Of a stretch of DNA of 64,000 bases, positions 19,906-61,100 are shown piece after piece; within the stretch, counting starts at the first letter, position 1; every line of letters starts with the position of its first letter. Both the position numbers and the translations under genes were made by a program. The stretch is from Orbicella franksi. Taxonomy: Eukaryota. A model generated the notes under the pieces. The model had not been told where the DNA came from. It ran no database searches and saw only the letters and a list, made by a program, of their open reading frames with translations. The stretch covers positions 2,914,001 through 2,978,000 of the forward strand of contig OZ116701.1 of NCBI GenBank assembly GCA_964199315.1, given 5' to 3'.

Positions 19906-21167
19906 ATGGCGGCTTGTCCCGCAATTTTCATTATTCTTGTCTATCTGTTTTCCACTTGTTTTTCCCTCAATATTTCTCTTGGAGGAAGTCCAAACATTAT
20001 CATCTTTATGACTGACAATCTCTCTATTGGAGATCTAGGCATTTACAACAATAATTCGCCGCAAACATTAACTCCAAACATCGATCGTCTAGCGGAAGAA
20101 GGAGTCGTATTTTCTCGCTGGTATTCTCAGTCATCAAGGATTTCATCCATCGCATCCTTACTAACGGGATTATTACCACCTCGTACTGGAATTATCAAAA
20201 GTAAGTTTCTTTCTTTCAAGGAAATCCCGTCGATTGCATCTTCTGGAGGCTTACAGCACAACGAAATAACCTTGGCAGAAGTTTTAAAGGCGAAAGGTTA
20301 CGCCACAAATTTTGTGGGCTTGTGGGGTTTAGGGGTGGGAAAAAATGGAGAATACTTGCCTCTTGGTCACGGGTTTGACTCGTGGTATGGGGTTCCATCG
20401 GCACACAAAGACCAGTGCATGGAAAGCTACAAGACAACGTCAGATTCGCAATACACTTGGCAAGCAGTGTGTTCGTTCTTCAGTCCGTTGCTTTATATTC
20501 TTCCATGTGTTGCCTTCATTGGTTGGTATAATGGACTTGGCAAGATAATCACTGTTTTCACGGTTATAATAGCTTTCATCTTGTACAGCAGTATACTGCA
20601 TGATGTGATTCACTTTATGATGGATTTCATCCAAGTAAGAAGTTGTGTTCTGTACAGAAACAGAAGTATTATAGAACAGCCCTATACTATAGAAAACATG
20701 ACCCTGCGGTTTACAAGAAATGCTGTACAATTTTTGGAGACATCGTCAATTTCAAGTAAACCCTTTTTTCTTTTTGTCAGTTACATGAACCTCAATCACC
20801 CAGTATTTACATCACGGTTCTTTTTAAATTCAACGACAAGTTCATACTCTGATGCTCTGAAAGAGGTAGACTGGAGTGTTGGAAGGATACTAAGAACATT
20901 GAAGGAACGTGACATTGATAACAGTACATTAGTTCTGTTTACGTCAGCGACTGGACATTACTTTGATGAATCATGTGACACTTGTAAAGAGGAAGAGACT
21001 GAGGATACTGATGAAACCATATTTTTAAGAGGTAAGACAGACCTCTTTTTTTATTGATCATTTATAATAATGATAATAATTTTATTATTATAAATTGATA
21101 CTGATTATTAGTTTTAAGCAATAGGAAGGGTTAGTTTAGACTTCCAGTTGTTTTAGTGAAGCACAAA

Positions 21168-21200
<33 letters not shown>

Positions 21201-23540
21201 AATGATGATGATGAGGACGGTGATGGTGATTGACGAGCTTCTGGATAGTGATTTATGAAAGATGGTGCCAGGCAGGATATAAGCTTCAAGAAGAGGATGT
21301 AGGTATCCATGGCAACCCAGAGAGTGGTAACCACCTGGCACTGTCTCATTAAAAAATCAGTTGAGATACTTATCAACCCAAACAATGAGTGGCCAATAGC
21401 AGTGAGGAAGATGGAGTGAAAGGCATGCAAAAAGCTTAAAGTAACTGAGCATCCTCACACAGCTGAAAATTATGCAAAACATGTAACTATAGCCTTGAAA
21501 AACCCACAGCACACAACTACTCCAAAATGCTGCTGACCAGCATTGGTTTAAGTCAAACTTGGCCTCAACATTCATAATTTCCTTCATAATTTGATAAGTA
21601 AATAAGATCCAGAACAGGATGAGAAACATTTTTCGACTCAAAAGTTGTTTTTAATACCCTCTCGTGAAGTGACAGTAAATTTTGTAGGTTAACTATCATT
21701 ATACTCCGAACAAGAGTACACATGATTAATGTTGTTTCCCCAGGGGGACTTCCATTTAAAAGGACAGGGGTGCTCATTGGAAATTTTGAAAAGAACCACT
21801 AAGAGGTACCATGGGTACGTGGGTGTGGCTTGAAATTTTTTTCTCCTAAGAGGTGCCAAGTCTAAAACATGTTATCTCCTGTCATATTTTTCCAGCTCAA
21901 TACCCTATATGGTACTGCAAAAGCTCCCGCTATGGACTTTTTGAGACTGACCACCCTAGGAGGTACCCACACCAATTTTTCAACCCCTAAAAGGTACAAC
22001 GAGCACTCCTGACCATTTTCTATGGGAGCCTTCCCTGGGGCTGTATCTTTATCTGTGACAACAAGCTATGGGAATGTTATTCTCTTGTAGGTAGCAGCAA
22101 GAATGATATTTGTGAGAGCATCATTCGTGTGCCAGCATTGATGAGATGGAAAGAAGAACTTGCAGAAAGACAGATAATCAGAACGCCTGTGACAGTGATG
22201 GATGTCATGCCAACCGTATTAGAATTATTAAATCACAGCACTGGTGCATTCTACTCGGACGGCAAAAGTTTATTGCCTGTCTTGTTTAACTCGTCACAGG
22301 AATCTCAACACAAATATATTTTCCATTATATAGAAGTTACCAAGCCTGCAGCCATAACTTCTGGCCCTTACAAAGTTGTATATACAGAGATTAAAGGTAA
22401 GTATCAAGTCTATGAGATGCAACTAAGTTTTTGCTACTTGGGTCATTAGGTCTACATCTTACAAATGTCATGCATTTAGCTTGTATGTTTTCTTTTATCA
22501 AACAAATCCTCTAAATGGTCTCAAATCAGTATGCTGGACACATGTACAACAATATATTTAATACAATGCTGGCATAAAGTTTTGAGTCACCTGTTGTTGC
22601 TGTCCACACCTGAAGCAAACTTGTTACTTTGTGGTTGAATTCTATCAACAACAGGCAATATCAATGGAAAATCAAGCATACTCAGCTGTAACAGGTGTTA
22701 CTGGTTACAGTCCTTAATAACAGCCCAGTTTAAAGAGGGTGACACCGAAAAAGTTAACCCTAACCATGCTCTAAGTATATATATTATACATTAAACAGGA
22801 TTTAGGAAGTCTTAAATTACATTGCCATTCTTATGGTATTTTAATTCCTCTGGTACCCACTGGGGTTGCAAAGAACCTTCTGCATTTAAGAGTTGGCTAG
22901 GTTGCACAATCTAACCTTGAATTAGTAAGCATACACACAATGAAGCTACAGGCTACCTCAAACCCTCTGCACATGTTTAGGGCCTGTTACATCATTACAT
23001 ATTTGTCAGATTTTTATGATTTTAATTATTTCTCTGTTCTCTTGTTAGTTTTACGTTTGATTGATGAGATGTATCAAACATGGGAGACAGTGTTTTATCA
23101 TATTTTCAAACAAGTTCAAACTTCTCAAAAGTATGCTGCTGCACATCATATTTTCAACTCTCTTCTCAGTGTTTGGAAATGTGGTAAGACACAGTTACTT
23201 GTGTTTGATACTTAAGTATTACATCAAGCACATGTAAACCATTCTAGTTCCTTTATTTTTCTCTTGATCAGATAACAGAGGACAACAGTCCTTTGAAACT
23301 CCACTGCTGTTTAATGTCGAGACAGACCCAGAGGAGACATCACCTCTGCCAAATGCAGAACACAGTGAGCTTTTGGCAAACTTTTCAGAAGCCCTGGTTG
23401 ATCACATGAAAACAAGAAGAAATAAATGGCACTCACAGCTGGATAGTAGAATAATTCCTTTCTGGTTTCCTTGTGCAAATTTTCCACATTGTTTCCAAGT
23501 TTGTAACGAGAACAGTGACTTTTCAGATTTGTTCAACTGA
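19906..23540 (+). CDS. Steroid sulfatase/arylsulfatase D-H-like membrane protein (566 aa), predicted catalytically inactive
   Basis: Exons 19906-21031, 22091-22396 and 23272-23540 (phase 1 junctions, 1701 nt). Signal peptide, PNIIIFMTD..GDLG, TPNIDRLAEEG, LLTG..P.RTG, EITLAEVLKAKGYAT, GHGFDSWYG, hydrophobic hairpin insert, KPFFLFVSY, EVDWSVGRILRTL, IRVPALMRW, PLLFNVETDPEE and C-terminal PC..FPHC match the STS/ARS family layout. Confidence 0.9.
21168..21231. repeat. (GAT)n microsatellite
   Basis: Direct reading; in intron 1 of the sulfatase-like gene. Confidence 0.9.
21738..22040. mobile_element. Non-autonomous DNA element in intron 1 of the sulfatase-like gene
   Basis: TIR-like ends ccccagggggacttccat / atgggagccttccctgggg; internal repeated ctaagaggtacc-like motif. 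Confidence 0.6.
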
Positions 23541-28300: not shown

Positions 28301-29892
28301 TCTTAAACGCTACTGATACTTACCTACAAACATCATCCATTTGTTTGATGCAAGTCCAAGAAAAATATACAAGCAAATGGATGTGAAAGCGCCTGTAATA
28401 GCGATGGTGAGATCTGACCAATTGAGAATCTTATTCATTAGTGGTATCCCCAAAACGACCCCAATACCTTTAAGAAACAGAACCTCCGCAAAGAAGTAAC
28501 CAATCTGTGAAGGACTGAAGTTGCGTGGACTGTGCTTGCTGTAGATAGCTGTAATATCATTGAAACCACCAAAAACTGAAAGCAAAGTGATAGTAAAAAG
28601 ACATAATTAACAGTAAAAATAAAATGGTAATCATTTTCGGGAAATATGATCCATATCCACCTCCAAAGAAGAATTAAACATGATTATTTGCCTTTATTTG
28701 CTATTATGTTTTTTTTCCCCAGACACCCGTCCCTAAATGCTTTGGTAAGGTAACAGGTAAAGTCTACATAGAGCCATGTGGCCCATCAAGCAGGCGCAAA
28801 TATCTCCGGTTTCTGTAGCATGAAGTGACTAGGAGTATTTCTACTTCCCCCTGGATGGGATGCTAGTCCATCACAGGGTTACCCCCAGCATTAAATTCTC
28901 TAGTACTCACTTATACACCTGGGTGGAGAGAGGCACTGTAAAATTAAAGCGTCTTGCCCAAGAACACAACACAATGACCCCGACCAGGACTCAAACCTGG
29001 ACTGCTAAATCCGGAGTCGAGCACATTAACCATGAGGCCACCACGCCTTCCAACGCCTTGATACATTATCTTTACCATAAAAAAGGTACTCACTTATTAG
29101 AATAAAAGGTAGCGCACCAAATGTGATCACCAATAAATTCAGTCTCTGATGTCGGGGTCGTTGCTTGGATAAAACTCGGAAGCAAGCCTTGAGGTGATTG
29201 TGCACAGCAACTAACGCCCAGTTTCCTTCCTGATCTCCTTCCGGGAAGTAAGACTCTGGAAGAATTAAACTAACGTAGAGTATAACGATAACATTCAAGC
29301 CTAAACACAAACCGAATGCCGCCATAAAGCCCTGATGTTCCACTAGCACGCCACCGATTAGGTTACCAACAGTGCCTCCTAAAAATATCATGGACTCCAG
29401 AATGGCTACTCTCAGAGTTCGCTGAGATTTATCAGTGATATCAGAAATGTAAGAAAAAACACCAAGAAGTGTTGTGGCAAATCCACCAAAGAAACCCGAG
29501 ATGCAGACTCCGATAAGGATGAAATTCACGTCAAGTGAAAAATACCCCACATTCAGCATGTAATTGATGTAAAGTAGAACGCTTCCAATGGAAGGCAGAA
29601 TTAGCACTGTTTTGCGGCCGACTTTATCTGACCAGGAACCCAAGATCAAGGAGGCAGCAATAGAAGGTACCATCAGAGAAACAGATTGATACAAAATCCA
29701 TTTCGACGTTTTTTCGTGTACAAAATCTTCTTGTGACTTGGTCAGGTTTTTGCATGTTTCGGCGCCATACTTATCGTAACAGATCTTTTTAAATGCTAGC
29801 TGCTGTATCAGTGGAAATGACATGAAAGTGCATAGCATGTAAAAGAAAAGAACGGGCTCCACAGTGATTTTTCGAAAGTCGATGATCGCCAT
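25388..29892 (-). CDS. SLC46/proton-coupled folate transporter-like MFS transporter, paralog 1 (476 aa)
   Basis: Exons 29094-29892, 28324-28575, 27224-27307, 26504-26660 and 25388-25526 (1431 nt, phases consistent). Motifs ITVEPVLF, GSWSDKVGRK, SYISDIT, RVAILES, SIISKQV and GTTFA are typical of SLC46. Confidence 0.93.
28755..29049 (-). mobile_element. tRNA-derived SINE, same family
   Basis: Colinear with 13905-14198 (gtggcccatca...ggtttctgtagcatgaag...ttacccccagcattaaattc...cttgcccaagaacacaacacaatg). Confidence 0.85.
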
Positions 29893-29973
29893 GTTTGTTC
29901 CTTGACCTGGGTATAAAACGAATCCCTTACATGAATGGCAGATTGGTGTTGTCCGCTACCGCTGGAGGAAGCC

Positions 29974-30855
29974 GGGGGGGGGATAGGGGGTAGGGATAGG
30001 GGGTAGGGGAGTAAATGGGGAAAATGGAGGAATGGCGAAATGGCGAAATGGGGAAATGGCGAAATGGGGAAATGGGAGAATGGGAGAATGGGAGAATGGG
30101 AGAATGGGAGACTGGGAAACGAGGAATGGGAATGAGGAATGGGGAATGGGAAATGGGAAATAGGGAATGGGATATGGGATATGGAAAATGAGAAATGGAG
30201 AATGGGGAATGGGAAATGGGGAATGGGGAATGGGGAATGGGAAATGGGAAATGGGGAATGGGATATGGGATATGGGATATGGGGAATGGGGAATGGAAAA
30301 TGAGAGACGGGAAACAGGAAACGGGAAACGGGGTTTGCGGAGTGGGGAACGGGGAATGGGGAATGGTGAATGGGGAATTGAAAATGGAAAATGAAAATAA
30401 GGAATGAGGAATGGGGAATGGAGAATGGGGAATGGGAAATGGAGAATGGGGAATAAGGAATGAGGAATGAAAAATGGAAAATAAGGAGTGGGAAATGAGA
30501 ATAGGGAATGGGGGAATTGGAAATGGAGAATATGGAATAAGGAATGGAAAATATGGAATAAGGAATGGAAAACGAAAAATAAGGCCTGGGGAATGGGTAA
30601 TGAGGAATGGGGAATGGGGAAATAGGGAAATGGGAAAATGGGGAAATGGAAAATGAGGGAATGTGAAATGAGGAAAGGGGAATGGGGAATTAGAAATAGA
30701 AAATGAGGAATGAGGAATGAGGAATGAGGAATGAGGAATGAGGAATGAGGAATGAGGAATGAGGAATGGGGAATAAGGGATGAGGAATCGAAAATAGAAC
30801 ATAAGGAATGGGGAATAGGAAATGAGAAATGTGGAATGGGAAAATGGGGAATGGA
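29974..30855 (+). repeat. ~880-bp purine-rich satellite of GGAAT/GGGAAT/GAGGAAT/GGAAAT units with a 5' G-run cluster
   Basis: Direct reading; perfect (GAGGAAT)n block near 30704-30765; almost no C on the + strand. Confidence 0.95.
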
Positions 30856-31199
30856 AGTTATCCGAAGGTGTGCATATAAAGTTTTTTAACTGCAAAGCTG
30901 TGAACGAAGATCCTGTTTGATTGAACATTGGATCTTACAGGAGATCTAATCAGCCAAACTTGAAAAGTAAAATGATGAGAAGTCAAGGACTACTGCAAGG
31001 CCGACACATCATGGTATATTTAAAACAATATTTCAGCTGGCCAGACCAGGCTTCTTAGGGTTTAGGTGTTACTAAATTATAAAAATGAAATTACAATATT
31101 ATCTAGTGGTGGATGTCATAGCACATAAAAAGGATTGGCGGAAATAAGGAACACTGACAAACTAAATAAAGTAAGGATAACACGAGTCTATGTAGGTTA

Positions 31200-37200: not shown

Positions 37201-39575
37201 ATGTGACATCAAATGAAACCTTAGATGGGGGCAGCTTGATTCAACATAGGCTGCCCCAATCATTCAACCCTAAACCATCTTGGTGAAAAAAAGATTAAAA
37301 TGAAAGCAAGCAAGAGCAAAGATGTTTGCTTTGCTCCAAATAAAAGAAAAAGATAGGCAAAGGCATAAAACTCTTTATTCATGAAACAAATAAATCACAC
37401 AAATACTTACCAACAAACATCATCCATCTGTTTGATGAAAATCCAATAAAAAGATAAAAGCCAGTAGCTATGAAAGCACCAAAAATAGCGATGGAAAAAT
37501 CAGACCACTTGAGAACTTTTGTTAATAGTGGTATTCCTAAAACCACTCCAACACCTTTGAGAAATAGAAACTCAGCAAAAAAGTAACCAATAAGTGATGG
37601 ACTGAAGTTCAGTGGGCTGTGCTTGCTGTCGAGGACAGTAATATCACCAATAGCACCAAACACTGAAAATATTAAAGCACAGAACATTTGGTGGGATTCA
37701 TTAAGAACATTGTGAATAAAGAGCTGACAAAAAAGCCAAAATTTATGAAGATAAGTAACGAAAAGAATAAATTTCAACTTAACTTTAGGTGGGTATGTGG
37801 GGTTAATGACCTTTGAAAGGTATAGGTACTGTTAGTTGTTTATCAGACGACGATCGAATAGTATCCCATGATGCAATTTTCTACCTACACGACGCAACAT
37901 CGAAGTTATCATGGATTTCAGTGTGAAATAATGTGGTTTTCTCTGCGGTCTGTTTCTTATTTTTATTGCAGTAAAAGGTTAGAAAAGTGCATTATTTAGA
38001 TCTTTGACACGATTATGATGATTTGTAAGTGTTTAAGAGCGCAGCCTTATAATAGTATTCTTGTCTTTGATTGTGCTATGTGACTATTCGCATCACAAAG
38101 TGTTTATTGACCCGTAACAAGGTCATGAATATTCGCTTTTCTTTGCACAGTATTATAACATCAGACAAGAAAGCTTAAATTCACTGAAAGCCACTCAATC
38201 AATCAGTCAATTGGTCGGTCGGTCTGCCAATTGGTCGGTCAGTTGGTCGGTTAGTCGGTTGGTTGGTCAGTCCATCAATCAGTCGATCCCTGCTATTTTG
38301 CTTGCAGTCTAGAAGATATGTGTTCTCTAGCCTCTTTATTGACTGACAATACTTCACACAGTCAATTCAGTTGCTAGTGTTCTAAGGTCCCCTAATGGTT
38401 AACACACTGGACTCTGGATTAAGCAGTCTGGCTTTGAGCATTGGCCAGGGTCATTGCATTGATTTATTGGGCAAGGTAGTTTATTCACAGTACCTCTCTC
38501 CTCCCAGGTGTATAATGGGTACTGGTAAATTTAATGCTGGGGATAACCTTGTGATGGACTAGCATCCCATCCAGGGGGAAGTAAAGATATCCCTAGTCAC
38601 TTCGCTGTCAAGGACTGAATCTCTAAGAGTGTGTATAACACAGCGGAGTCGTGTAATCAGGTCAAACAGACCCTTATCATATAAAGTCCATTGTTTTGTG
38701 TTTATGATTTGATTGACTGGTTTTCTTCTCAGTTTGACAAGTCGCACTGTAATGATTGATAACAAAAGCTACTCACATAGTACAATCAAGAAAAATATGC
38801 CAAACATGATCACCAGTAAATTCAGTCTCTGATGTTGGGGTCGTTGCTTGGATAAAACTCGAAAGCAAGCCTTGAGGTGATTGTGGACAGCAACTAACGC
38901 CCAGTTTCCTTCCTGATCTTCTTCGGGGAAGTAAGACTCTGGAAGAATTAAACTAACGTAGAATATAACGACAACGCTCAAGCCTAAACACAAACCGAAT
39001 GCCGCCATAAAGCCCTGATGTTCTACTAACACGCCACCGATTAAGTTACCAACAGTGCCTCCTAAAAATATCATGGACTCCAGAATGGCTACTCTCAGAG
39101 TTCGCTGAGATTTATCAGTGATATCAGAAATGTAAGAGAAAACACCAAGAAGTGTTGTAGCAAATCCACCAAAGAAACCCGAAATGCAGACTCCGATCAG
39201 GATGAAATTCACGTCAAGTGAAAAATACCCCACATTCAGCATGTAATTGATGTACAGTAGAACGCTTCCAACGGAAGGTAGAATTAGCACTGTTTTACGG
39301 CCAACTTTATCTGACCAGGAACCCAAGATCAAGGAGGCAGCAATAGAAGGTACCATCAGAGAAACAGATTGATACAAAATCCATTTCGACGTTTTTTCGT
39401 GCACAAAATCTTCTTGAGACTTGGTCAGGTTTTTGCATGTTTCGGCGTCATACTTATCTTGACAGATCTTGTTGAATGCTAGTTGCTGCGCAAGTTGAAC
39501 GGACATGATGGTGCATAGCATGTAAAAGAAAAGAACAGGCTCTACTGTAATTTTCCGAAAGTCTATGATCGCCAT
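34129..39575 (-). CDS. SLC46/proton-coupled folate transporter-like MFS transporter, paralog 2 (451 aa)
   Basis: Exons 38777-39575, 37411-37662, 36381-36464, 35086-35242 and 34129-34192. The first four exon lengths (799/252/84/157) are identical to paralog 1; the last exon stops early at TAA. Confidence 0.92.
34199..34252. repeat. A-run plus (CAA)n microsatellite forming the acceptor tract of the last exon of SLC46 paralog 2
   Basis: Minus strand (TTG)n-poly(T)-catgtag|ATGG. Confidence 0.9.
34400..34960. repeat. 22-bp minisatellite (TAATACCTAGGGATGTCTGTGA), ~19 tandem units plus one outlier
   Basis: Tandem units at 34400-34815 with no spacers; one more unit at ~34939-34960; in intron 4 of SLC46 paralog 2. 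Confidence 0.95.
35894..36031. mobile_element. Short MITE-like element
   Basis: Inverted ends agagcagttttcaattgagt / actcgattg..aaaactgcttt; a remnant of the same ends occurs near 60020-60055. Confidence 0.6.
36197..36308 (-). mobile_element. SINE 3' fragment, diverged
   Basis: aagtaaagtctg...gtatttctacttcccctggatggaatgctagtcc matches the tail of the same family. Confidence 0.65.
38196..38288. repeat. Degenerate (GGTC/AGTC/AATC)n tetranucleotide repeat
   Basis: Direct reading. Confidence 0.8.
38386..38602 (+). mobile_element. tRNA-derived SINE, diverged, + orientation
   Basis: ggactctggat...ttgggcaag...cacagtacctctctc...ccaggtgtat...gggtactggtaaatttaatgctgggg..aacc...gatggactagcatcccatccaggggg is the reverse complement of the family body. 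Confidence 0.75.
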
Positions 39576-46102: not shown

Positions 46103-49100
46103 TTACACTCGAGCAAAATTATCGTTAACGAATTGTGTTATTTTTTCCACGAGTGACTCTGAAATGTCCAGTGCTTCTTGTGCTTGGTCGGTGGTGAAAG
46201 CATCGGAAGGGATCACATCATTGCGATGGAAGTGAGGGTACCTGGTCTGCTCATAGTAATTCTTGAGTTTAGCGGCCAGGAGAGGAACGTCCTCAGGAGA
46301 CCCATTCAACTCTGTTATCTCATAGGCAAGGTTCAACACATCATGTGTTTCTAGTTGGCTCTCGGCAATGCCACAGGCTGCGTACAGGGCACTCTTGAAC
46401 ACTTTTTCGGTTGCTTGTTGGCATAAGAAGCAAACTAAAGCAGGAAATTTGGGTACTTGAGCGTGTAAATGCTTAGCCGCATTTAGATCTTCTCTGGCTT
46501 GTTTCATCCATCGCTTTGCTTCGTTTCTCTGAGGGTTGGTCGACCGCTTTGAATACGGGGATCCCTGGTGTGTTTGCTGCTTAAACGTGTCGTACGTTTG
46601 CCTCTCTTGTCGAGCACGCTGGTTCCACTGGCTGAAGAAATCATGGAAGCCCCTGGCTCCGTCTTGTTTTCCTTTTTCCTTGGCATCTCGTAGATTATCT
46701 CTCCAGGAGTTAGGAAACAGCTTTTCCATTCTCTCTATTTCGTTTAGCAGGAATTGCATGACATCATGGCTAATATCACAACCGATATTCTTATCTGGAT
46801 GCCATCGAAGAAACAAACGTTTTATGACCTTTCTTCTTTCATTTTCCGGTAACTTCCAAGCTTCCCATAGGGTCTCTTTGATTTCTTTCTTTGCACTCTC
46901 AAGGCGTTCATTTCTGCTCGCCGCTCGACGCTCTGATTCCTTGGGGTCTCCAGTGAATAATGTCACTTCACGCGAGTCCGAGAGTTCAGGTACCGCATTG
47001 GGCACTTCAGAACTTGATCTATCGAACTTGTACAGGTCAAGTACACTGACTTCAACAAGGCGAGGCTCTCCAATATCAATGCGATATTTAGCCTTGAAGT
47101 TAAATCTGCTTGTCTCCATGGACCGTTTACGATTTGGTACTTTCCTAACTACTTTTGCGTAGACGTAGAGAGGTTCACTGTCATCAATTCTGCCATCTTC
47201 ACTTCTTCGCTCTTTCTCGTAGCCAACGATTTCACCTTGTCGAAAGAAGTACTGGATATCTTGCCTGAGAAGATAATGATACATAACAGGAATCTCGGAT
47301 CCAAGAACAGGCTCCGTCGTCCGCGCCTCGCTTCCCATGAGATCTTGAGCTACGCCACATCTGTCAAGTGATGGAAGTATCTCGTCTGGGACCCTGCATG
47401 CAAGCATTGCCTGAAGATAGATCTCCTTCTCGATTTGGTTATGAATTAAACGATTCACCTGAAAGCATAGTTGGATGTGGAGGGGATTTTCGTCAGTGCC
47501 ATGCCTAATAAACAACTCCCATTCCCCATTCTGCTCTTCTAAGAAACAGTCTTGCATTTCGTTACTGTGCTGAAGCGGGCGGCCAGATTCCAGGTGTATC
47601 AAGTGAGTGTCAAGTGATGCCATGCACGTCACACTCAGGGAGCTACAAAGGACCTGTACTTGTTCTTTGACTTCCTGCGGTAGATTGGGAGTTTGTCTCT
47701 GATGACGGATAACACGAAGAATCCCATTCACTAGCTTAGGAGAAAGCAAGATGTTTCGATATCTGTTAACGAATGGGCAGGGATCTGCGCCAAGAGAGTT
47801 GTCTACTATGCACCGCTTATCTCTACAGCTCGGATGTATCTCCTCCCGCAGCAAATTCTGGATGGTCTTGGCCCTGAGACGCAATGGTAGAAGACCGAGA
47901 AGGTACGATAGCCGATCTGCAGTTAACTCTCCTTCCCGACTTATATCGACAAAATCGCCGGCAAAGTCTCTTGCACGCCGTTCAAAGCTTGGACAGTCGT
48001 GAAAAATTAGTTCGTTTGATGGTTTAAGAAAACCGTCCTTGCTGGGTAAGTACAGTTCATTTAGTAATAGCAGATATCTCGTTGCCGCTTCTTCGCTTTT
48101 TTCTTTCACTAGCTGTGACAGAGTGGTAAAAAATCCATGCGTTGCCTCCCTGGCCACTCTTTTCTCGTTAGGTTCCATGTGCTTGTCTTCGCAAAGCTCC
48201 TTCAACCTTCCCAAGATATCGGCAAACTGTAATGGCGTTGGTTTTTCATTTGCTCCCAGTCTCTTGAGTAAGTGCTCAAAATGACCATACTCCCGAGGTA
48301 CCTTGTAGAAGAAAGGTGGCAGTTCCGTTGTGGTCTCAAACGCTAGCTGATTCCCCTCCACAAACACGCGGCCCTCTTCCACAGGAATGCATGCCGTTTT
48401 CATGAGAATATTGCCAACAGCAAGACAAGACTTGTTGCATCTTTCAGACAGTGAGGTTCCTGGGCAATTGCATTCACTTTTCAAGAAACTGAATGCCTCG
48501 TATATGACGTCATGAAGAAGCTCCCTTTGGTCCTTTGGGGTGTCTTTATGAACATTTCCACTGTGTGATTTTGTCAGAACAGCAACGTGATTGATAACTT
48601 TATCCAGCGGAGGCAGAAGGGAAACTCCGAGGTCTTCCAATACTTGTTTTTCGGCAGTATTTGGAGTAGCCCAAGTTGGAAGAAGGGGAACGCAAGTCCA
48701 CGCAAGTTTCTGCTGTTCACAGGGTAAGGCGCCATGGAACTCGGTGAAAGGTGGAACGTCTTCCTTTTTAAGGCAAGCAAGTTGTGGTTGTAGGGCTTTC
48801 AGTGCGTCTGAGGCAATCTCAGCTGCCACAAATTTGATGCTGGAAACAACATGTAGAAAGCTGGCATCATGCAAATCATCTTGTTGAAACAGACATGTCA
48901 CGAGTGTTTTTGACTTCTCCCTTATTTGGGGATCCCTGTATCTGGCTTTTGCTTCAGAGGCCAACGATTCGGCAAACTGAAGGAATTCCTGTTGTGTAAC
49001 ATTGTGCTTCAATCCAATCTGCCGAAGCAACGGAAGCCAGTTTGACAGTCGGTACTCTCCTGGTGGGAAATTACTCAGAGGGACCATTTCTTTGAATACA

Positions 49101-52100
49101 GGATTCTCAGGATCGTAAAATTGGCTCGCAGGAACAAGTCGGTTACTGCCATCGTGAAAAATACAGGCTTCTCGAAGAGCATCGAGTAACGTGGTCCTCT
49201 CACTTGAACTCTTCAAGGTGACAAGGAGTGTGTCCCTGATGTACATCAACACTTCTTGAACACCTGACGCTGAGATTGCGTCAAGATTTGGCAGGATATA
49301 CTTCACAAAGACATCTACTTGCGTAAGGTGGCTGATGTCCAATGCCTTGTACAGAGGTTCAATTTCTTGAATAGCTTCCAAGAGCACACAGCTTTCTTTC
49401 TCTACACGTCCTTCAATCTCTTCCAGTGAGACGCACTGTGGCAAGTCAACAACATATGAAAAGGCATACGAATCAAGACTGACAAGTCTACCATTCAACG
49501 TGTTGTACAGCGGAAGCTTTTTCAAAAGGGATTGGTTGCTATACACGGTGGTTACGTCCTCTTGCAGGAATCTTAGGAGAGTCACGATTTCTGCTTGTGC
49601 AAGTTCGCATTTAAATACATCACCTTTGGACAAGTAATGTAAAATACTGACCACATCTTGTCTTGAGTATGGCTTTGCGAGGTGGGGTGATACAATCAGT
49701 GATGCATCATCTTTGTTTATTCGTGAAAGAACTGTAAAATCCAGTTGAGCACTTCCAAGCTTGCACAGAATTCTTACCATCCTGTCTTCATCGTAAATGC
49801 GGGTACTCAAATCCAACACGGTTTTACCGAGGGACACTGGCGCAAGGGTGCCATTAGAGGTAGGGATAATGGGCCAGTCCTCGAGTGGACGAAGAGTTTC
49901 GGTTGCGTCTTCTCGGTCTTCAAAGCTTGACTGTCGCTCTTGGTATGTTGTGATAATCATTTCCCACAACGTTGTCAACCACTCAACAGATGGTACACTA
50001 TTTTCGCTTGGTTCCCATGGAACTTGCCTGTCGGCCGCAAACCACCTTGATGGAAGGATTTGGATCAGATATGGCGCAATCGATTTCGTGTCAAAACGTT
50101 TGAAGACTGTGGATTTCCAAATGTCATTTCTTGGAAACTTGGAAAACAGTGGAGTGAATTCTCTATGGACAAAGAGGTCTTTCTGTGAAGACACTAGACT
50201 TGAATGTGGTGTGAGGAAAACTGGATTATTGGAATCAAATTTTCTTAGTACTTCGTCGTCGGTAAGAAGGAGAGGCAACCCATTTAAACGTTGTAGGAAG
50301 TATTCATCCTTCATGCAGTATTCCATCAGTAGTTTGAGACAACTGGCATGTTTAAAGGTGGTATTATCAATTGAACAGGGAAGCACATCAATGTAACGCG
50401 TAGCTTTTGCAAGGAACGCCAAAACGATGTCGGGACTCACGGTTTTTACAGTTGCGGTTGCTTCTTTAAAATTTGAGTAGATTTTCGGCGAAGCCTTAAC
50501 GATTGGAACGCCAACCTTCAATAGCAGTTTTTCCAGGTCTGGGTTGGAAAGGAGGCTGAAAAATGCTTGTTGTTCGTCTTTGTCGCTACAGGGTGGAACC
50601 CACAAGCATGGACAGAGTGGTTTTGTGCCATACTTACTAAAGCTACGATTGGGAGACGCAACATCAATGAGCGGTGGTTCCTCTCTGATAATGGGAAGTA
50701 CAGGTTGGTTAGAGCTCGCTAGCAGTCTGTACACGGTTGTGGCAATACCCTTCCATTCAGTGTGAATGCTGTCTGGTTCAGGAAAGATGCTTTGGTACCA
50801 GTTCAAGCCACTCGTGGAATCAGTGATATGATTGAAGTACCATGGATCTCCCTGTGAAATTCCAGGTATGTAGGCCCTTGCACTGACAATCAACTCCACA
50901 TAGGCTGGTGCTAAAACGTGGTTCTTGATGAAGTTGTTCCACTGAGTTCTCTGACCCTGACCGCCTTCATCTTTCCAAAGATTCCGTCTAGAATTATCAA
51001 GTATAAATTGCCCATTAACTTGAACAGGGAGACCTGTTTCAACCGGTAACGGGAGGAAGCAAAACGCGCGATGAGTCTTGCTGGCTTGGTTGGTTTTGTG
51101 CTCACTTAAGGAACGTCTTCGTCGTGATGGCATATCATTTGTGGCCACACGGGCTGCCACCGCTGCTCGGGGAAGCAGACCGTACTTGTTTCCTTCTGGA
51201 ATTACTGGTTTTTCGCCATGCAAACGAGAACCAAGGCACTGATGAATAAGCCATTCCTCTCTTCTTCCAAGGGTATCTTGAATGGTATTGGTGTACGTAA
51301 TTCCAAACCATGGAATGCTATTGGTTTTCAGATTCCTGCATCGCATGACTTCTGCGTCAAGGGCATGGATCTTCGGTACATCTGTGGTTGAAATTTTTGC
51401 GGCTGCTTCGTATCGTCTTACTAATCTGCCATTTTCTATTCTGGAGATGCTTATTTTAGTGACACTTCTGAGGAAGAGGAGGATATCGCGGATCTCACCT
51501 TCAAAAATAGTGAGCAGTTGATCAATGCTCGAAGAAGTGAAAGCCTTGGAGGAGATTTGGGACTCTTTAGCAGTCAAATCCGTTCTTATAGGAAGACGGA
51601 ACATGGTAGAGTTTTGCAGTTCAAAAAACTCTTCTAGGTAGCAGGGTCGAACATCAGCAAAATTGTTCCAGAACTCTTCATCAAGCGGATCAAATCGACG
51701 TCCTGGGAACTCCATTGTTGCGTCAGGTGCGTATCGGGCGTGAGGATCGAGAACACACAGTGTTTCGCCGTTTGTAACAAAGCTTGGGCAATCAGTAATA
51801 TGGTACACCGCGTTAAACCCGATTCCATATTTTCCGGTCTTTTCAGGGCTGTCAGTCTTGCTTCCGATGCCAAGCCTCTGTATGCCCTCAATGTCCTGTT
51901 CAGTGAACGCACAATCATTGTAAATACACAGTGCAGGCCCTTGGAGTTCTTTCCATCGTTCCGACAGCACACGGGTGGTACCATGTTGGCGCGGGTCATG
52001 TACAAAATGTACCTCTGTGGTCCCAGCGTCATCTGCGTTTTGGATAATCTCTTTAAGAATTCCCACGTCACATGGATATGACTCCAGTACCTTTTTCAGT

Positions 52101-55100
52101 CGATCCGTAAGGCGTTCACTCTGACCAAATGGTCTTCCGATGCAGTGGGAATATCTATCCAACTTTTGTTCTCGAATAGTATGGGCTCCTAATCTGTGGG
52201 CTAATATCCCGGAGATGTCTCTGTGAACACATCTTTTTTGGTCTTGCTGGGGCATCCAAGGAGCGTCGTTGATGGCAAGCTCCCCCACAGGTGTTAGGAC
52301 TAAATCTGCATTTGGCAAGGGAAGTTGACCCGAATAGGAACTCAGGGCACCAGTATTCATCATTGCGATCTCCTCCAGGAAGGCTTTCACAGTCTTAAAC
52401 TCTTGTGATGTAAGGGGCTGACCTTGTTTTCTCTCCTCGAGGACGAAAAGAGCATCGACCATATCCTCTCCAGAAAAGGATTCCTGGACCCCAAGTGCTT
52501 TAAAGAGATCCTTGAATTTCAAAGTGAAATCTTCTGGAAGGCAGTAAAGAAAAGGAGCTCCATTGTTATTCCATGAAAAGGCTACTTGATTTGGTGTCAC
52601 GAACTTGCTCTCGACAAATATCCATGGCTTTCCGCTTAAAAGGTCTTGAATCACTTGTTTGTCTGCTGTGTTGATTCGCTCTTGGAGAAATTGATAAACG
52701 GCCAGGCAAATCTTTCTTATACATTCTCTGTTGGCGGGGTCATGCGTAACCAGGCCTTGTACAGCATAATACAGTTGCAAAAGGACGTCGTTCACGGTTG
52801 CGCGATGACTTGTGAACCCTAATAGCTTAGCAACATCTTTGCCCACACGGTCACAGCCTGTCTCTGGGGACTCGTCCAAGACTGGGTGTACTGATCCTAA
52901 CAAAAAGATAGAGTCGTCGCGGACTAACTCTGCTGCAGATAGTAGTTTCTGTACACCTTCCTCTGAACCCTTCCATGGCAGGCAGTACTCAGTAGGTCTA
53001 GCCATAACAGGAAGAAAATAAATCTCTGAAAGTTGTTTGCGTTGTGTTGGGCTTGGTGGAGATAACTTACACATGTTGTCGTTCAAATATTTAAGTAGGT
53101 TCCTTGATATCTGCAGGGCTTTGTCTTTGTCATGGGTGGCCAACGCGGCAATGAACACAGCTCTTTCACAAATCCATTTCCATGTCAACAAACTGTCTAC
53201 CATTCCCAGCTTTTTCAATGCGACGAGTCGTTCTGGTCTGAGGAAACTGGCTCCAGTTGGAAAGATATTCTCTTCCTCAAGAAATAGGCTGCTGGCAGCT
53301 CCAGTAGGATCAATTAGGTCTCCAGGCCGAGAAAGTTGATAACCCTCTGATGAAGTCGGAATACATTGCGATTCTCGCAAAGGCTTCGCGTACTTGTGAG
53401 AACCCCGCAAATATTCATCCAGTACGTGGCATGTGATTGGATCTCTCAGGTTGTTTGGCAGTTTGGCAATATTTGGAAAAAAGACGTCACAAACAAACTT
53501 GTCAAGAGTAACTGTCTGGTCAACAACCGCTTGTTGGAGACCTTGGTGAAATGCGTTGGAAATAAATCTTGGAAGCTGAACCACGTTGTAGCCACACTTA
53601 CACATTATAGGGTAGCTTTCAGGAAGCCTGGTCACATTGTCGTCCAAAAAGACGCCATCCTCCACAGATACCCACTGGGACTGACTCTTTAAAATTGGGG
53701 CTGGACTACTGGCTATGCTCTGATAAACACTGTCAGCAAACTTTGACCAAGTCTTGGATGGCGCTTTTTGTGTATCTGGCCAAAGAGTGTCAAATGGAAA
53801 TTCCACCACATTTCCTTGTCGATGGAGACTAACAATTCCTTCTAGAAGTTGAACGTAAGCCTTGGAAGCAGCGTCTTCTAAGAGGTATTGGTTCCAAAGA
53901 ACTTCAATCGGCTTTTGTAAAGAATGACCACCACTGGTATCTTCCCAGAGATTGCGGCGATTGGTTGTCACAGCGAAGCATCCGTTCACATGAACTGGAA
54001 AACCTGTTTCCACGCCCAGGGGTAGGCCAAGAAATGCTTCACCCACTATTGTCTCTGGTCTCCACCGCTTATTGTTGTCGTTGCCTAACAGAGCAGCAAC
54101 CTCAGCTTTCGGTAGTAAACCGTTGAGCTTCCCATCTTCACTCTTTGCCATTTCCAGTGATTTCCTATTGCCATAACATGAACTTATGAACCAAACCTCT
54201 TTCGCTAGTTGATTTCGTGAAGCCACCCACGAACCGCTAGGGTAGACTTGAGACTTAATTGACACTATTCTTGATGAACTGGTACGGTATTCATGCGATT
54301 GCTGTTCAAAGACCCAGCTTCCATTAAGATCAGCTTCAAGTGAAACATGGTTATTGTTTTCCTCCGATGGTATACTGTTGTCTGGATTGCTAGTCGACGA
54401 GAACGTCTCCAATGTTTCCTTTTCCACCTCAAACACTGCATTCGGAAGTGAAGGATCTTGATCGGAAGATATCTGGAAGAAACTTATCTTACAGACATTC
54501 TGTAGGAAGAGCAACATCTTGGACGCATTTTCCTGAAGGCCCGAGATCAATTTAGTAAACTGCTGCTCGTTGTAGTACTTGTTACAAATTTCGCTTTCAC
54601 TGGCCTGTCTCATCGTCCTTAATGGCAGCCTGAAAAGTGTTCCGTCATAGAAGAATGGTTCTCCCTTCTTCTCAAATGTGCATCCGAATACTCCTTGGTA
54701 AGGTTTAAACTGATCTGGAAAAGCGCCGAGTGCCACTGCGTTGCTTTTGAGATTCAGACGGATACCGGGACGAAACTTGTCCTTGATAAGGTCTCCTAAA
54801 TGACTTGTGTGTGGATCAAAAAAGGCAATGAATTCACGACTGATAAAGCTTGGAAGGTCAGTGATATTGTAGACTGTACAAAATCCTATTCCAAAGCGGC
54901 CTAGCTTGTCTTGATTTCCTATTTTGGTTGCCCCAGCAAGCTTGTTGATGTTCTCAAAGTCTCTGTCTGTAAAAAGAGCGTCGTTGTATACCCACAGCGC
55001 TGGTCCTTGTGTCTCGGATAATCCAGGAGACAAGAGCTTCTCGGCCTTGTTTTTCCTCCAATCAAGTAGAAACTTAACTTCCGTTGCTCCCGCATCGTCT

Positions 55101-58100
55101 GCATTCTGGATTAGTTCTTTGAAGGTCGCCATGTCATCAGTGTGGTCTTTAATAATATTTTTCAGTCTAGTGGTTACTGGCTCGAATGGTCCAGTCTGCT
55201 GAAAGCCGAGGGTCTCAGTAACTGCTAACTTCCTGCTTAAAGGAGGTGTCCCTAAAAGCTGTGCAGTACCAGTGGAAATGGTTTTGTGTACAAGAAAAGC
55301 AACGTCACTTATATTGGGATCGCTGTTGCCTTGTCTCAGCCACTCGGCATCGCAAAAGCTGACATCAGTACATGGTTGAAGAATAAGCCTGTCGTCCTCC
55401 GTTTGGATGGGAATTAAAACTCTTTTACGAATGTCCGAGGGAAGAGGTGTACCATCTTGTGTCAGGAAGTCCAGAACATCGCGAGTCAGTCGAAGATCGC
55501 GCTTTACCTCCTCAATACTTCGTCTCTCTTCCGAGTGCCAGTCTCGAATCATGTACAAGACGTCTAAGGCTGATGACTCATTGAACGTCTCTTGAACACC
55601 GCAGCGCTCAAAGAAGGCGGAGTAGCTCTGGAAATCGTCAGATAGTACGAAGATGTAGGGTCGTAGATCCAGAAGACACTCGCTTTTTAACGCAATGCAG
55701 CCGGGCTTGGCGAAACCAGAACCATGCCATACCCAAGGCAAAAACGAATGTTCCTTTAGAACTAATACGGCTTCAGCTATGACAATTTCGCTGGAGAGGT
55801 GGCTGTAGACATCCTTGAGCATCGCTTGGAACTTGAGCAATTCAATTTCAGAAGATTTGTGCACTTGCTGTTGCCAAGTAGTAATAGCACCTTTCAGCTG
55901 CGCTAGGACGTAGGAAATTGGTGGCGGAAATGACCATCCGAAGGCTTTCTTGAGTTTCTCATCGAGACTTCCTCTAAGCACCGGCATAGCTGAGCCAACA
56001 ATGTTCACCATGTCCGCATCTCTCATATCCTTTGGAGAGTACAGCCTTCTTGCCACACCAAACCAAGGCATAGATGTCGGATACTTGCTAAGTGGCTCTT
56101 TGGACGCAGGAAGCCAGGGTAAGCTTGATAATATGCTTCCAAGGGAAACTTTCTTCGCTGATCCGGAGCTTTCTTCTAACAGTACCTCGTATTCAACAAG
56201 GCATGAGTTGTCATTTAAGAACTGTAACAATGCCTCGGCCCTTCTTAGAGCTGACTGTTCGGGAGCTTGTGTGATCTGCTTTGCTATTAGAAAGATGTCT
56301 TTGGCTTCTAAGGAACGACTTCGCCTAAGACCCAAGAAGACTCGAAGCAAGCTTAGTGCGTGAGCTTTGGCAAACTCTTGAGCGGGAAACACGTCGGGTT
56401 CACCTTCAAAAAGCTTCTGGATGACTTCATCTTCGGGATCGTACAATTCGCACGGCGGTTTTAAACTCCCGTTTGCAACTGGAACAAACCGAACGTTCTT
56501 CAAATGTTCCGGGAAGGCTTTGTTGTCGCTTGATAGGGCAGGAAGTCTTTGGATTACCCAGAACATCAAGTCTGAAACTTGTTCTCGAGTGTAAAATCCT
56601 CCGTCTTCGATGTAAGGAAATATTTTGTCGATCAAGAGGTCTGAAGTGTTCAGGATTCGCAGTGGAAGTCGCCGCAACAGCTGGTATGAGTCATCGTCAC
56701 TAGCGGAGAGTATCTGGTGCGAGCACTGGATCTTCGTACTCGATGGCAAATGCAATCGTGGAGGGGCAACGTCGAGTTTCGTACCCGACAGGGGTCCACC
56801 TGGCTGCACTGATGTAAAAGTTGTGCCGTCCAAAGCTTGAAAGATTGGCAACGTCATCAACGCCACTACTTCGTCATCAGAAGGATTTCTTAAGCTCGAC
56901 AAGAATGCTCTAATGGCTACCTTCTCTTCTGCGGAACAGTTATTGAGATTGTCATTCCCTGGCTCATTCATGACCGTTGCTAGTACTTTTATAACTCCAG
57001 AAGGGGTTGGTGGTTCGATGTAATTCTTTAACGCTGCATGATCACAGAATGGAGGCAAGTGGGGAAGAACAATACAGCCTGCCTTTTGAAGTGCAGTTGC
57101 CACGATCCTTGGTAAAGACCCAAAATACGACGAGCTTTGAATCACACAGTGATCTTTCTTAAGCTTTATAAGGTAACGCTTCTCCATCCTTCCCTCTGCA
57201 AGTGGAAGAAGAGGGATGGTTTCAAATGCAGTGAGATCTTTTGGAAATTCTGTTTTAAGCCATGACCATAATCCCCGCAGCCACACATCACCAGGCAAAG
57301 ATTCATCTTTAGGATTCCAAGGTACCACAACAGAACTGCTTTTCCAAATTTCAGGCATACTTTCGTGAACTAACTTTGGGACAAGAGACGGTGTTAGTTT
57401 CACAAGCTGGGTGGGTCCTGAAAGTCTTCTTTCAATTTCCCCTGCGACAGAACGCAAGGTTTCTAGCACGCTTCCTTCTGTTCTCTCATCTAAGAATCTA
57501 TGATCACTTCCTGGAATAAGACTTCTTGGATGACTGCGAGATGCAATCAATATACTGCTCTTTGGGTCGTATCCATGCACGTCACTTCGAAACTCTTGGA
57601 AGGTTTCATCAGCAAGAGGGAGAAGAGGAAGGCCAGCAAGTTCCGTGAAGTTACGATCCATGAGAATGAATTCTAAGAGGCACAGTTTCTCCTTCCTACT
57701 CAGACGTTCAAAGTTTACCCTGCCTTGATTACTTGGCACCCGATCGTCTCTGTCCATACCTTTGAGCTCGTAAATGTCCAGTTTTGTACTAGGGTGCAGG
57801 TCTCCAGGTGAACTTCTAGGTGTCGTTACGTTCCCACTAAACCCGTTACTATTTGGCGAGCTCAATTCAGTAGGCCGATCCCCTTTTAAAACAGCGCGCA
57901 CATAAGATGGCGTGATTTCTTGAGGTCTCCTTACTCGATGTTCCACGTATTCGTCAACAGCTTTCAGAGCTTGTGAAGGAAGTGATATCACTGGTTCGTC
58001 AGCTTGGAGGAGTGTCTCAATAACTACTTCACGAACTTCGTCGCGTACTTTGTTTGGGGAACATTCCAGACGGTCCAAAACGCCCTCTTCTAGGGTAATC

Positions 58101-61100
58101 CATCGTCCGCCAAGAGATTGGGTCCAAAACGCCGCTTTATCAACCAGGGCTGTGAAGAAAGGCCTTAAGACAACTTTCCAATGACCTTGGACGCGATCCA
58201 GGTCTGGCCAAATGCTGTGAACTATGGGACGCAATTCCTCACTTGGGCACTGTGATTGGGTGAGCGCCACAATAAGGCTTGCATAGGCTTTGCTGACTAC
58301 ATCCCGTGTGAGAAAAACATTCCATTCCGCTGCGTCGTCGCTTTGGCTTTCTGGACCGGGCCACTTGAGGTTTCTTCGATTATCCGTAAGTCCAAAGGCT
58401 CCATGAATATGCACTGGCAGACCTGTTTTGCACTCTGAATCGACAGGGAGAGGAAGGTAGCAGAACACCCGTCCAGTTCCTATCCTGGTATTCTCACCAG
58501 TTGGGTGCAGTGATACTGCAACTCCTGCCCATGGAATCAGCCCAAGAGATGAAGAAAGCTCTCCCAATCTCATACTTTCATGCCCAACCCGATTCAAGAC
58601 CATGAATTTGAATTGTCGCTCGTACTTGTCTGGTCTGTTGATTTCCACCGTCGTCTCATAACTCATTTCAATAGGCTTGGCAAGGAAACCTGTAGCAGCT
58701 TCAATAAACTTTCTTTTCACTTCCCTTACCGTCTCTCTTAGCTCGTCTTTGATTTGCACGGTGAAGATCTTCCTTTCCTTCTCAGTCCAGCTGGTCTCGT
58801 AGATACTTATGGTCTCCACACTCTTCAGAAAAAGTAAAATTACCGGCGCTTCCTCCATGAAGGACTCAAAGAGGCCATTGACCTTGGCCGCTGTGTACGG
58901 CTTAATCGATATTTTAGATGGCCATTTTCGTAAAGGAAGACGAAACAACGTCCCGTTAAAATATCCAGAAGAGATGTCGCAACCAAGGACATTTTCGTAA
59001 GGTGAAAACTGATCCCTGTATTGATGCATCAGAGGTTCGCGAATATCGTACCGTCTACCAGTTTCTCCTGTTCCAAAATAGGTCTCTTGCGGGTCAAGGA
59101 AGGCGATATGGTGGTCACTGATGACGCTAGGCAGATCTAAGGGTGAAAACATTATGTGAAGAAATAAAAAGTTGTATTAGAAAAAAGGTAGGGAATGCGA
59201 CAGACTTATGTAAAACAGACAACAATTGCATTAGTCAAGATAAACATAGCTTGGTGTTTCTCAAATCATAGCTAATGAAAAATAAGTTCAAGTTTTCCCA
59301 AGGGAAACAGTGAGTTTTGTTTCCCCGAGACCCACAATGTTAAACCTTTTGTTAGGTTGTTAGGTGACGTTCTCGTTGCCATCGTCGTCGTGGTTTGCTT
59401 AAGTTCCCTAATATCAGTGATGGGTTTCGTATGATTTAAGTCATTATAAATCGTACCTGTCACGTGATAAACCGAGTTGAATCCAACCCCAAAGCGCCCT
59501 GCCGCCACTGGGTCCTTTTTCTTGGATCCCTGCATGATGCTCTCAATTCCAACCCAGTCCTGCGCTTTAAAGAGACCATTGTTATAAACATACAGGGCTG
59601 GTCCTTGGAACTTGGACAAACCAACGTTGACAAGAGAAGAGGTGCCGAAGGCATTGTCACGTGAATCGAACAAGAATTTCACTTCCGTTGCACCAGCATC
59701 GTCAGCATTTTGAATCAATTCCTGCGAGGCAATGCAAGCCATTAAAACAGTGTTTGGGATAATGAAAAGCAGCAAAATATTACTGGTATTATATAAAGTG
59801 TACAGGAGGTTAACGACTGGATCATATTGAAATGGAGTTTATGCAACAACAAGAACAAGAACAAGAACAAGAACAAGAACAACAAAAACAACAACAACAA
59901 CCTTTATTTGTACTCATTGTAAAAAAACTCCGCACATTTTATAGAGAATGAAATAGAGAGCTGACTGCCTGGAATAAACCATAGGGGCTAGTGGGGCCAG
60001 GAAGCCAATTCAGATTTTACAGAGCGGTTTCTGTCAATATTGAAAACCGCTCCATAGATATCGATAGAGAAACAGAAATAAAGGTCGGTTGACTTAATTT
60101 AAAGGCAATGTAGCATTGTGCTAACAACACAAAACACCTACACCAAACACACATAGCGCTCACATAGCCAGTATCATAATTGAATATACTTACTCAAAAC
60201 TGAAGATGTATGTAAAATAAATAAGATTAATCATTAATTTAAAAGGAAAACCTTAAGACAATAAAAGCATGTTTAATGTGGAAGGAAACTAAAGCTAGCA
60301 AAAGAAGGAAAATATTATAAACACGTAACTATGCAGAACTGGCATTTATTTATAAAGTTTTTACAAAAGTTGAGACAATGAGCAGTTTTGCAATTTCATC
60401 GACCTTGAGGTTAGCCCATCTTGAACATGTTAGCCTAAAATTTTTAAGTTTGTTATTTGTAATCGAATCGAATCTTCTTCGTCCTGGTTGCTTTTTGGTT
60501 TATTTATAATCACTTCTGGAGTTTTCTAAATTTAAATGGCATAGCTGTCGTTGTTATGATTATTATATAGCTGTCACGTACAAAGAAATCAATGCTAGAT
60601 AACTTTACTTTGTGCAAAACATGATCTGTACTGTTGAAAAAATCCTCTTGTTTGTTCTGAAACTGAAATTTTTATTTTGAACGGATATTTGATTGTTTGC
60701 ATCTCTGCTCACCTGGCTTTGGCTCTTATGATAAGTTGCAAATAATTACCATAAAAATTATTTCATGACTTATGGCCGACGAAACTTTCAAGATAGTATT
60801 GCTCTTCTTTCGAGTACGCTTAAAATGTCTTACCTTAAGTATCTGTCCGCCGTCGGGATATCCCTCAAGAATCCTTTTGAGAACGACTGCAAGCGACGGT
60901 CTTCTCTGGCCATAAGACTGCCCTGGAATATTGAGCAAACATTTCACACATGTTGCATTTTCATAACATGGCGGGCTATTCGTTAGAGTTACTCGTTATT
61001 ATAACGGGTATTAATCTTAGCAGATCGATATCGTAAGACCGGTTTAGATTTCCAGAATGTACTGAGGAAGCGATGTCTGAAAGAATAGATTGTAACTGGA

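Follow-up and report, generated by a model that had tools for sequence, protein, structure and literature searches.

One sulfatase-family gene lies at positions 19906-23540 on the plus strand of a 64-kb window of the stony coral Orbicella franksi (OZ116701.1, positions 2,914,001-2,978,000; the window is the whole stretch of DNA analyzed, and all coordinates below are positions within it). The gene has three exons, opens with an ATG at 19906, closes with a TGA at 23538-23540, and encodes a protein of 566 amino acids (aa). A search of the 64-kb window found no other sulfatase copies. The open reading frame (ORF) and clean splice sites proposed by an initial annotation, which had read the gene as an intact but catalytically dead membrane sulfatase, were rebuilt in a combined ORF and splice search, where a single GT/AG exon combination produced the 566-aa frame. 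Three alternative in-frame combinations gave 563-565 aa and differed solely in the splice sites of intron 2.

Exon 1 matches the Pfam Sulfatase family (PF00884, E = 1e-33, above cutoff), and exons 2 and 3 match the sulfatase C-terminal families SGSH_C and Sulfatase_C. Among solved structures, the top match was human steryl-sulfatase (STS; 8eg3/1p49, E = 1e-48), with an alignment that ran unbroken over residues 24-356 and included the membrane hairpin. The signal peptide and STS-type hairpin described earlier were both recovered, the first as an N-terminal hydropathy peak and the second as a two-helix region with hydropathy peaks at about residue 195 and at 217-230, aligned continuously to STS 184-240. 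An AlphaFold2 model of the ortholog from Oculina, which is 85% identical, reached a predicted local distance difference test score (pLDDT) of 81 and a predicted template-modeling score of 0.84, with long helices at 179-208 and 210-244. When this model was searched with Foldseek, the best match was STS 1p49 (template-modeling score, 0.75-0.77), and the top matches were all sulfatases. In fold and sequence homology, the predicted protein belongs with the alkaline-phosphatase-like type I (S1) sulfatases, and its hairpin places it in the STS-type membrane-bound subgroup.

The active site carried by this scaffold is nearly gone. Relative to human STS, to which the protein is about 30% identical, nine of the ten canonical catalytic positions are replaced: D36 by N38, P77 by S80, R79 by I82, K134 by L139, H136 by G141, H290 by N297, D342 by A348, Q343 by T349, and C75 by R78 or by nothing, depending on the aligner. 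Every motif quoted by the initial annotation is present, with R78-I82 at 20137-20151, but its statement that all catalytic residues had been lost must be narrowed, as the first metal-binding aspartate (STS D35) survives as D37. Similarly, the Cys-to-Arg replacement it described is what MAFFT returns, while HMMER gives a one-residue deletion; neither alignment yields a Cys or a Ser-x-Pro-x-Arg.

Taken by function, the losses extend to each part of the catalytic machinery. The type I signature C/S-x-P/A-x-R reads R-I-S-S-I at residues 78-82, with no Cys, Pro, or Arg, and the protein cannot carry formylglycine because the motif used by the formylglycine-generating enzyme (FGE) is absent. Three of the four divalent-metal ligands (STS D35, D36, D342, and Q/N343) are replaced. 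The residues that bind sulfate or serve in acid-base chemistry (R79, K134, H136, H290, and K368) are represented by I82, L139, G141, and N297, and corals show no conservation in the region of the GGK368 motif. As every catalytic criterion of a type I sulfatase fails, the protein, as judged from its sequence, is best regarded as belonging to a pseudoenzyme offshoot of that family and not as a sulfatase.

This erasure is shared by relatives. A protein search found close stony-coral homologs in Oculina (85% identity), Stylophora (76%), Montipora (61%), and Porites (60%); in the alignment of the matches, every stony coral has these dead motifs, and CxPxR occurs in no ortholog. The segment QSSRISS[IL]AS[IL]LTG is almost invariant across 24 stony-coral sequences, in all of which R78 is identical. 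Beyond stony corals, the motifs diverge progressively. Anemone-like sequences lack the Cys and read S-x-S-x-R and GHWGLG, and a group whose cluster contains the octocoral Paramuricea is likewise Cys-less, with PTSSR, NQ, and GLWDQG. A further Cys-less group, which has no taxon label and falls with hexacoral sequences in trees, reads GTATR and still has DD and ADNG. An exhaustive HMMER search over 1.84 billion representatives added another Cys-less group that includes the scyphozoan Sanderia.

In a careful maximum likelihood (ML) tree rooted on nonhairpin sulfatases, all cnidarian sequences, including those of Oculina, Montipora, Porites, Actinostola, the Paramuricea cluster, and Sanderia, formed one clade with support of 100/100. 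Active bilaterian sequences surround this clade, and its sister group consists of active echinoderm proteins (96/96); the window sequence falls inside the hairpin clade (100/99 against the outgroup) in a separate "invertebrate" group outside the vertebrate STS clade. A 71-sequence tree agrees, and the cnidarian clade in it holds no active member. As a single Cys-less clade spans hexacorals, octocorals, and a scyphozoan with no active member nested within it, the loss predates the anthozoan-medusozoan split. The simplest reading of the tree is that the nucleophile was lost once in the cnidarian stem and that the remaining site then eroded differently in each class; the GTATR group, with its metal ligands still present, looks like an intermediate. 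The clade is pan-cnidarian and much older than the coral-only lineage first assumed.

Isolated Cys-less paralogs of the hairpin type also occur in the annelid Owenia fusiformis (P0166), the chiton Liolophura sinensis (P0168), and the scallop Ylistrum balloti (P0176). These are separate, lineage-restricted losses nested among active lophotrochozoan sequences, and they differ from the cnidarian proteins in what remains: the motif Arg persists in Owenia and Liolophura, and K134 and H136 persist in Owenia as well.

Two other sequences in the trees deserve mention. In Paramuricea clavata, the octocoral member of the Cys-less clade sits inside gene models of 1038 and 1257 aa that are annotated as "digestive organ expansion factor homolog" (P0146/P0148, CAB3991684.1/CAB3991683.1), probably a fused annotation of two adjacent genes. 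An active hairpin sulfatase attributed to the protist Rhodelphis marinus (P0299, EukProt) takes the basal position in the animal "invertebrate" clade; it could be a contaminant, come from prey, or reflect a truly deep origin.

Conservation of the gene extends to its structure and neighborhood. Seven orthologous coral genomic loci were compared, five spanning the gene (L001-L005) and two on shorter contigs covering exons 1 and 2 (L006 and L007), and all share the exon structure over the portion covered. Each of the five complete loci carries these three exons bounded by canonical splice sites, and their ORFs, 561-581 aa long, are intact. An MFS transporter gene lies downstream in the window, and a Sugar_tr/MFS gene occupies the matching place in L001 and L004, which supports orthology and a sulfatase-MFS neighborhood conserved among corals. 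Intron 1 is 1059 nucleotides (nt) long in the window and 706 nt in L006, the closest relative.

Substitution patterns across these loci point to sustained constraint. Nei-Gojobori (NG86) ratios of nonsynonymous to synonymous rates (dN/dS, omega) were 0.10-0.20 over 15 pairs, with dS saturated in the deep pairs. The window and L006, which share 92% protein identity, differ by a dN of 0.038 and a dS of 0.193 (omega, 0.20; Fisher P = 6e-14). Under the ML model GY94+F3x4, eight sequences and 562 codons gave an omega of 0.219 with a log likelihood (lnL) of -9222.0; fixing omega at 1 lowered lnL to -9631.3 (2ΔlnL, about 819), and omega of 1 is rejected. With omega at 0.10-0.22, the shortest branch included, in a clade that spans the cnidarians and in which no ortholog has CxPxR, the gene is maintained by purifying selection across species as expected of a pseudoenzyme, in line with the initial proposal of a selected protein and not a decaying pseudogene.

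Table 1. Features of the gene and its protein in the Orbicella franksi window
Feature	Position	Strand	Basis
Exon 1, codons 1-375 plus 1 nt: signal-like N terminus, remnant active site, membrane hairpin	19906..21031	+	ORF/splice search, Pfam Sulfatase, STS match
Hydrophobic N-terminal segment, probable signal peptide	19906..19968	+	Kyte-Doolittle peak of 2.19 centered on residues 10-18
D37-N38, aligned to STS metal ligands D35-D36, second lost (MTDNL from residue 35)	20014..20019	+	Alignments
Degenerate formylglycine signature R-I-S-S-I-A-S-L-L-T-G (SSRISSI at residue 76)	20137..20169	+	Alignments
Loop residues 96-116 (IIKSKFLSFKEIPSIASSGGL), most conserved segment of the cnidarian clade, aligned to STS 93-111	20191..20253	+	Column entropy, STS alignment
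GLWGLG (residue 138) replacing GKWHLG; K134 to L, H136 to G	20317..20334	+	Alignments
STS-type two-helix membrane hairpin, about residues 183-245, between conserved Cys171 and Cys247	20452..20640	+	STS alignment, hydropathy, ortholog model
NLNH (residue 295) replacing H-x-H-T; H290 to N297	20788..20799	+	Alignments
SATG (residue 347) replacing SD[NQ]G; D342 to A, N/Q343 to T	20944..20955	+	Alignments
Variable acidic loop, residues 354-375; EEETEDTDE at 361-369	20965..21030	+	Ortholog model, coral alignment
Intron 1, GT..AG	21032..22090	+	Splice search; precisely missing from contig L009
Exon 2, C-terminal subdomain	22091..22396	+	Pfam SGSH_C/Sulfatase; 58-89% identity across seven orthologous loci
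Intron 2, GT..AG	22397..23271	+	Splice search; still in contig L009; junction from homology only
Exon 3 with stop codon, Sulfatase_C region	23272..23540	+	Pfam PF14707, E = 3e-8; 60-80% identity, five orthologous loci

Where selection acts within the protein was examined by comparing column entropy in 28 cnidarian sequences of the Cys-less clade with that in 22 active sequences sampled from protists through mammals. In the active set, entropy is zero at nine of ten catalytic columns; in the cnidarian set, the catalytic columns have 0.75-2.45 bits. Over the 420 shared columns, the means of the two sets are about equal (1.72 versus 1.81 bits). Both sets conserve 35 structural positions, among them the Cys pair flanking the hairpin and an N-x-T sequon aligned with the "NLT" site of STS. 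Residues conserved only in the cnidarian clade are mostly hydrophobic or structural, and the residues of the old pocket are now small or hydrophobic (L, G, I, A, and T). The loop at residues 96-116 stands out, with an entropy of 0.87 bits in the cnidarian clade versus 2.19 bits in active enzymes and the consensus T-G-[IM]-[IL]-[KR]-[SG]-[KR]-[FIY]-L-[PS]-[FY]-x3-P-S-[LIV]-A-S-x-G-G-L. It aligns to STS residues 93-111, which in the 2003 STS structure reportedly include R98, T99, V101, and L103 at the membrane-adjacent substrate entrance.

The acidic segment near the end of exon 1 behaves in the opposite manner. It had been considered an added insert, but the corresponding loop in the nearest active invertebrate relatives is equally long or longer, and it is better described as a variable loop. 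Across seven corals not one of its 22 residues stays invariant, it is acidic in stony corals alone, and residues 355-374 have a pLDDT below 50 in the ortholog model.

Comparison with functional members of the family shows what was kept. The hairpin, the Cys pair at its base, the "NLT"-aligned sequon, and the C-terminal subdomain are common to the window protein, human STS/ARSC (1P49, 8EG3), and the vertebrate ARSD-H group. The nearest active relatives are proteins named "steryl-sulfatase-like" or "arylsulfatase H-like" from echinoderms, hemichordates, nemerteans, and molluscs, such as those of Antedon (P0162) and Ptychodera (P0033), with which the cnidarian proteins share a one-residue-shorter premotif, "S-Q-x-x-C," and a related loop motif (KG.ILPF...GGL). 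These active invertebrate proteins keep all ten catalytic residues, whereas the cnidarian clade keeps none consistently.

We therefore favor, at a probability of roughly three in four, a model in which the window holds a real gene maintained by selection, encoding a member of an inactive STS-type branch, and in which this branch is a pseudosulfatase family found across cnidarians that lost its nucleophile a single time, ahead of the divergence of anthozoans and medusozoans. Because selection has retained the protein in corals, anemones, octocorals, and jellyfish, a nonenzymatic role for it is very probable. The protein would sit like STS in the endoplasmic reticulum or secretory membrane as a hairpin-anchored glycoprotein with a lumenal globular domain, where FGE could not activate it and where it would hydrolyze no sulfate ester. 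It may act by binding or scaffolding, engaging a lipophilic ligand or a partner protein through a surface formed by the hairpin and the hyperconserved loop at 96-116. The small hydrophobic pocket, together with constraint on the loop and hairpin, favors such a role over canonical recognition of sulfate esters. Binding of a sulfated ligand at the canonical site, one of the functions first suggested for this protein, is unlikely because all sulfate-coordinating and most metal-coordinating side chains are gone.

An exact search of Joint Genome Institute (JGI) metagenome contigs for the predicted exon 1-exon 2 junction returned one match, Ga0099806_1122196 (L009, 1404 nt), which is 98-99% identical to the window, lacks exactly 21032-22090, and stays open in frame across the junction, confirming the exon 1 donor at 21031/21032. 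The contig fits a partly processed transcript (library type unconfirmed), evidence that is supportive but not conclusive; intron 1 is precisely removed, and intron 2 is still present. If L009 is of RNA origin, splicing of intron 2 may be slow, or some transcripts may keep it. An anemone-like Logan contig (L008, P0028) was also considered as transcript evidence, as it joins the equivalents of exons 1 and 2, but the joined exons run into nonhomologous sequence with no poly(A), and it was not counted because it could be genomic DNA from a species lacking intron 1.

Several points weigh against the preferred model. Evidence of expression comes from a single short public contig that retains intron 2 and represents partly processed RNA at best. 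No full-length spliced coral transcript turned up in the protein database, where querying with the C-terminal half of the Oculina sequence recovered only three annotated coral proteins, none of them a full-length product of a transcriptome. The loop proposed as part of a binding surface is modeled with low confidence in the Oculina ortholog (pLDDT below 50). Finally, the absence of an active cnidarian hairpin sulfatase refers to lists of top matches and not to whole proteomes: none labeled cnidarian was present among the 150 best representatives at 50% identity or among the 120 best matches of the active echinoderm sister protein, many of which carry no taxon label.

One alternative is that the protein regulates active sulfatases or their maturation, either as a heteromer with an active membrane sulfatase or as a decoy for FGE/SUMF1 in the manner of pFGE/SUMF2. 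Pseudoenzymes elsewhere are established regulators of active paralogs, and the complete fold and the membrane anchor, both of which are kept, would suit such a partner. pFGE/SUMF2 is an FGE paralog without formylglycine-generating activity that acts on FGE. It is a conceptual analog only, an endoplasmic reticulum-lumenal pseudoenzyme of the sulfatase pathway with an unrelated fold, and the window protein lacks the FGE recognition motif. A regulatory role, raised in the initial annotation, is weakened because the CxPxR recognized by FGE is lost and because no active cnidarian hairpin paralog was found among the representatives and sister matches described above; we consider it improbable.

Less probable still is a neofunctionalized enzyme that kept or gained another activity, for example, through the conserved serines S76, S77, S80, and S81. 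Ser and Thr nucleophiles occur elsewhere in the alkaline-phosphatase superfamily, the near invariance of the stony-coral segment QSSRISS[IL]AS[IL]LTG and the strong purifying selection speak in its favor, and anemone-like members place a Ser at the Cys position (S-x-S-x-R). However, nucleophiles in this superfamily depend on a metal site next to them, where the window protein has N, A, and T in place of D36, D342, and N/Q343. The old nucleophile position also varies among cnidarian classes (R, S, G, P, or Q), and no pan-clade polar constellation takes the place of the one that was lost.

The weakest alternative, a nonfunctional relic that is unexpressed or decaying, open in frame by chance, or a gene model artifact, can draw on the lack of direct RNA-seq or protein support for the locus, but we give it very little weight: ORFs and splice structure are intact in five independently sequenced loci that span the gene, neutrality is rejected with an omega of 0.20 even on the shortest branch, the clade persists across cnidarian classes, and the exon 1-exon 2 junction exists in a public contig, a combination that contradicts a decaying pseudogene.

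The selection-maintained pseudosulfatase that we prefer may not be alone in cnidarians. NVE16448 has been described as a pan-cnidarian cnidocyte "arylsulfatase," a conserved target of miR-2022, and was treated as an enzyme (Cell Rep 2023, PMC10548089). Its in situ probe (PMC10548089, Table S2) translates to YYVSPMDTPSRASFMTGKYP and HAVGKWQLGFFA, which include SPMDTPSR, with D-T-P-S-R for C-T-P-S-R (Asp replacing Cys), and GKWQLG for GKWHLG (Gln replacing His). NVE16448 is ARSB-like by its sequence motifs and lacks the hairpin, unlike the hairpin-type window protein, and is a different paralog. These substitutions make it a candidate for another conserved pseudosulfatase of cnidarians, and a Cys-less NVE16448 suggests that cnidarians have more than one conserved noncatalytic sulfatase. 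The window gene itself was considered as the miR-2022 target "arylsulfatase" and rejected: the window contains no miR-2022 site, the best match to the miRNA, whose core is confirmed by the same Table S2, having 7 mismatches in 24 positions, and the probe belongs to the ARSB-like paralog.

The literature we searched gave no description of pseudosulfatase or inactive sulfatase families, and searches on steryl-sulfatase in corals and on nonenzymatic sea urchin arylsulfatase returned nothing specific to the cnidarian hairpin family. Sea urchin arylsulfatase has been described as an extracellular matrix component, a precedent that is not used as evidence here. Among bacteria, SulfAtlas flags nine S1 sulfatases with an Arg-to-Ile/Leu replacement as ones that "may be inactive" (PMC5066984). 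That replacement is also found in the window protein, but the nine come from planctomycetes and lentisphaerae and carry one substitution each, unlike the cnidarian family, which is a conserved animal clade with the entire site erased.

More speculatively, and with considerable reservation, we suggest that over half a billion years ago cnidarians turned an STS-type scaffold into a membrane-anchored, nonhydrolytic receptor or chaperone for a lipophilic, sterol-like ligand. If so, and with the Cys-less NVE16448 counted in, sulfatase folds would have given rise repeatedly to noncatalytic proteins in the phylum, and the cnidarian proteins would be the first described pseudosulfatase family.

Databases name proteins of this clade "steryl-sulfatase-like" or "arylsulfatase L-like," and studies of steroid and sulfate metabolism or of gene expression in corals and anemones would therefore count them as enzymes. 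The annotation can now be corrected: an entire cnidarian branch appears to be catalytically dead yet is constrained like active enzymes. Sulfatases would join the enzyme families with ancient pseudoenzyme lineages. The clade also represents a natural experiment in which the chemistry has been erased while the hairpin and the loop that reportedly lines the substrate entrance have been kept, and it could help reveal what the noncatalytic parts of steroid sulfatase do.

Other features of the window were also noted. Intron 1 contains a (GAT)21 microsatellite at 21168-21230. Downstream of the sulfatase gene, on the minus strand, two MFS/sugar-transporter-like ORF blocks lie at 29026-30928 and 38769-39575 (Pfam MFS_1, 5e-22 and 5e-24). 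Further along the same strand is a giant single ORF of 4349 aa (46103-59152), followed by an ORF at 59272-59775 with a Sacsin (SACS) domain (E = 2e-34); these two are, by their predicted products, a sacsin-like gene.

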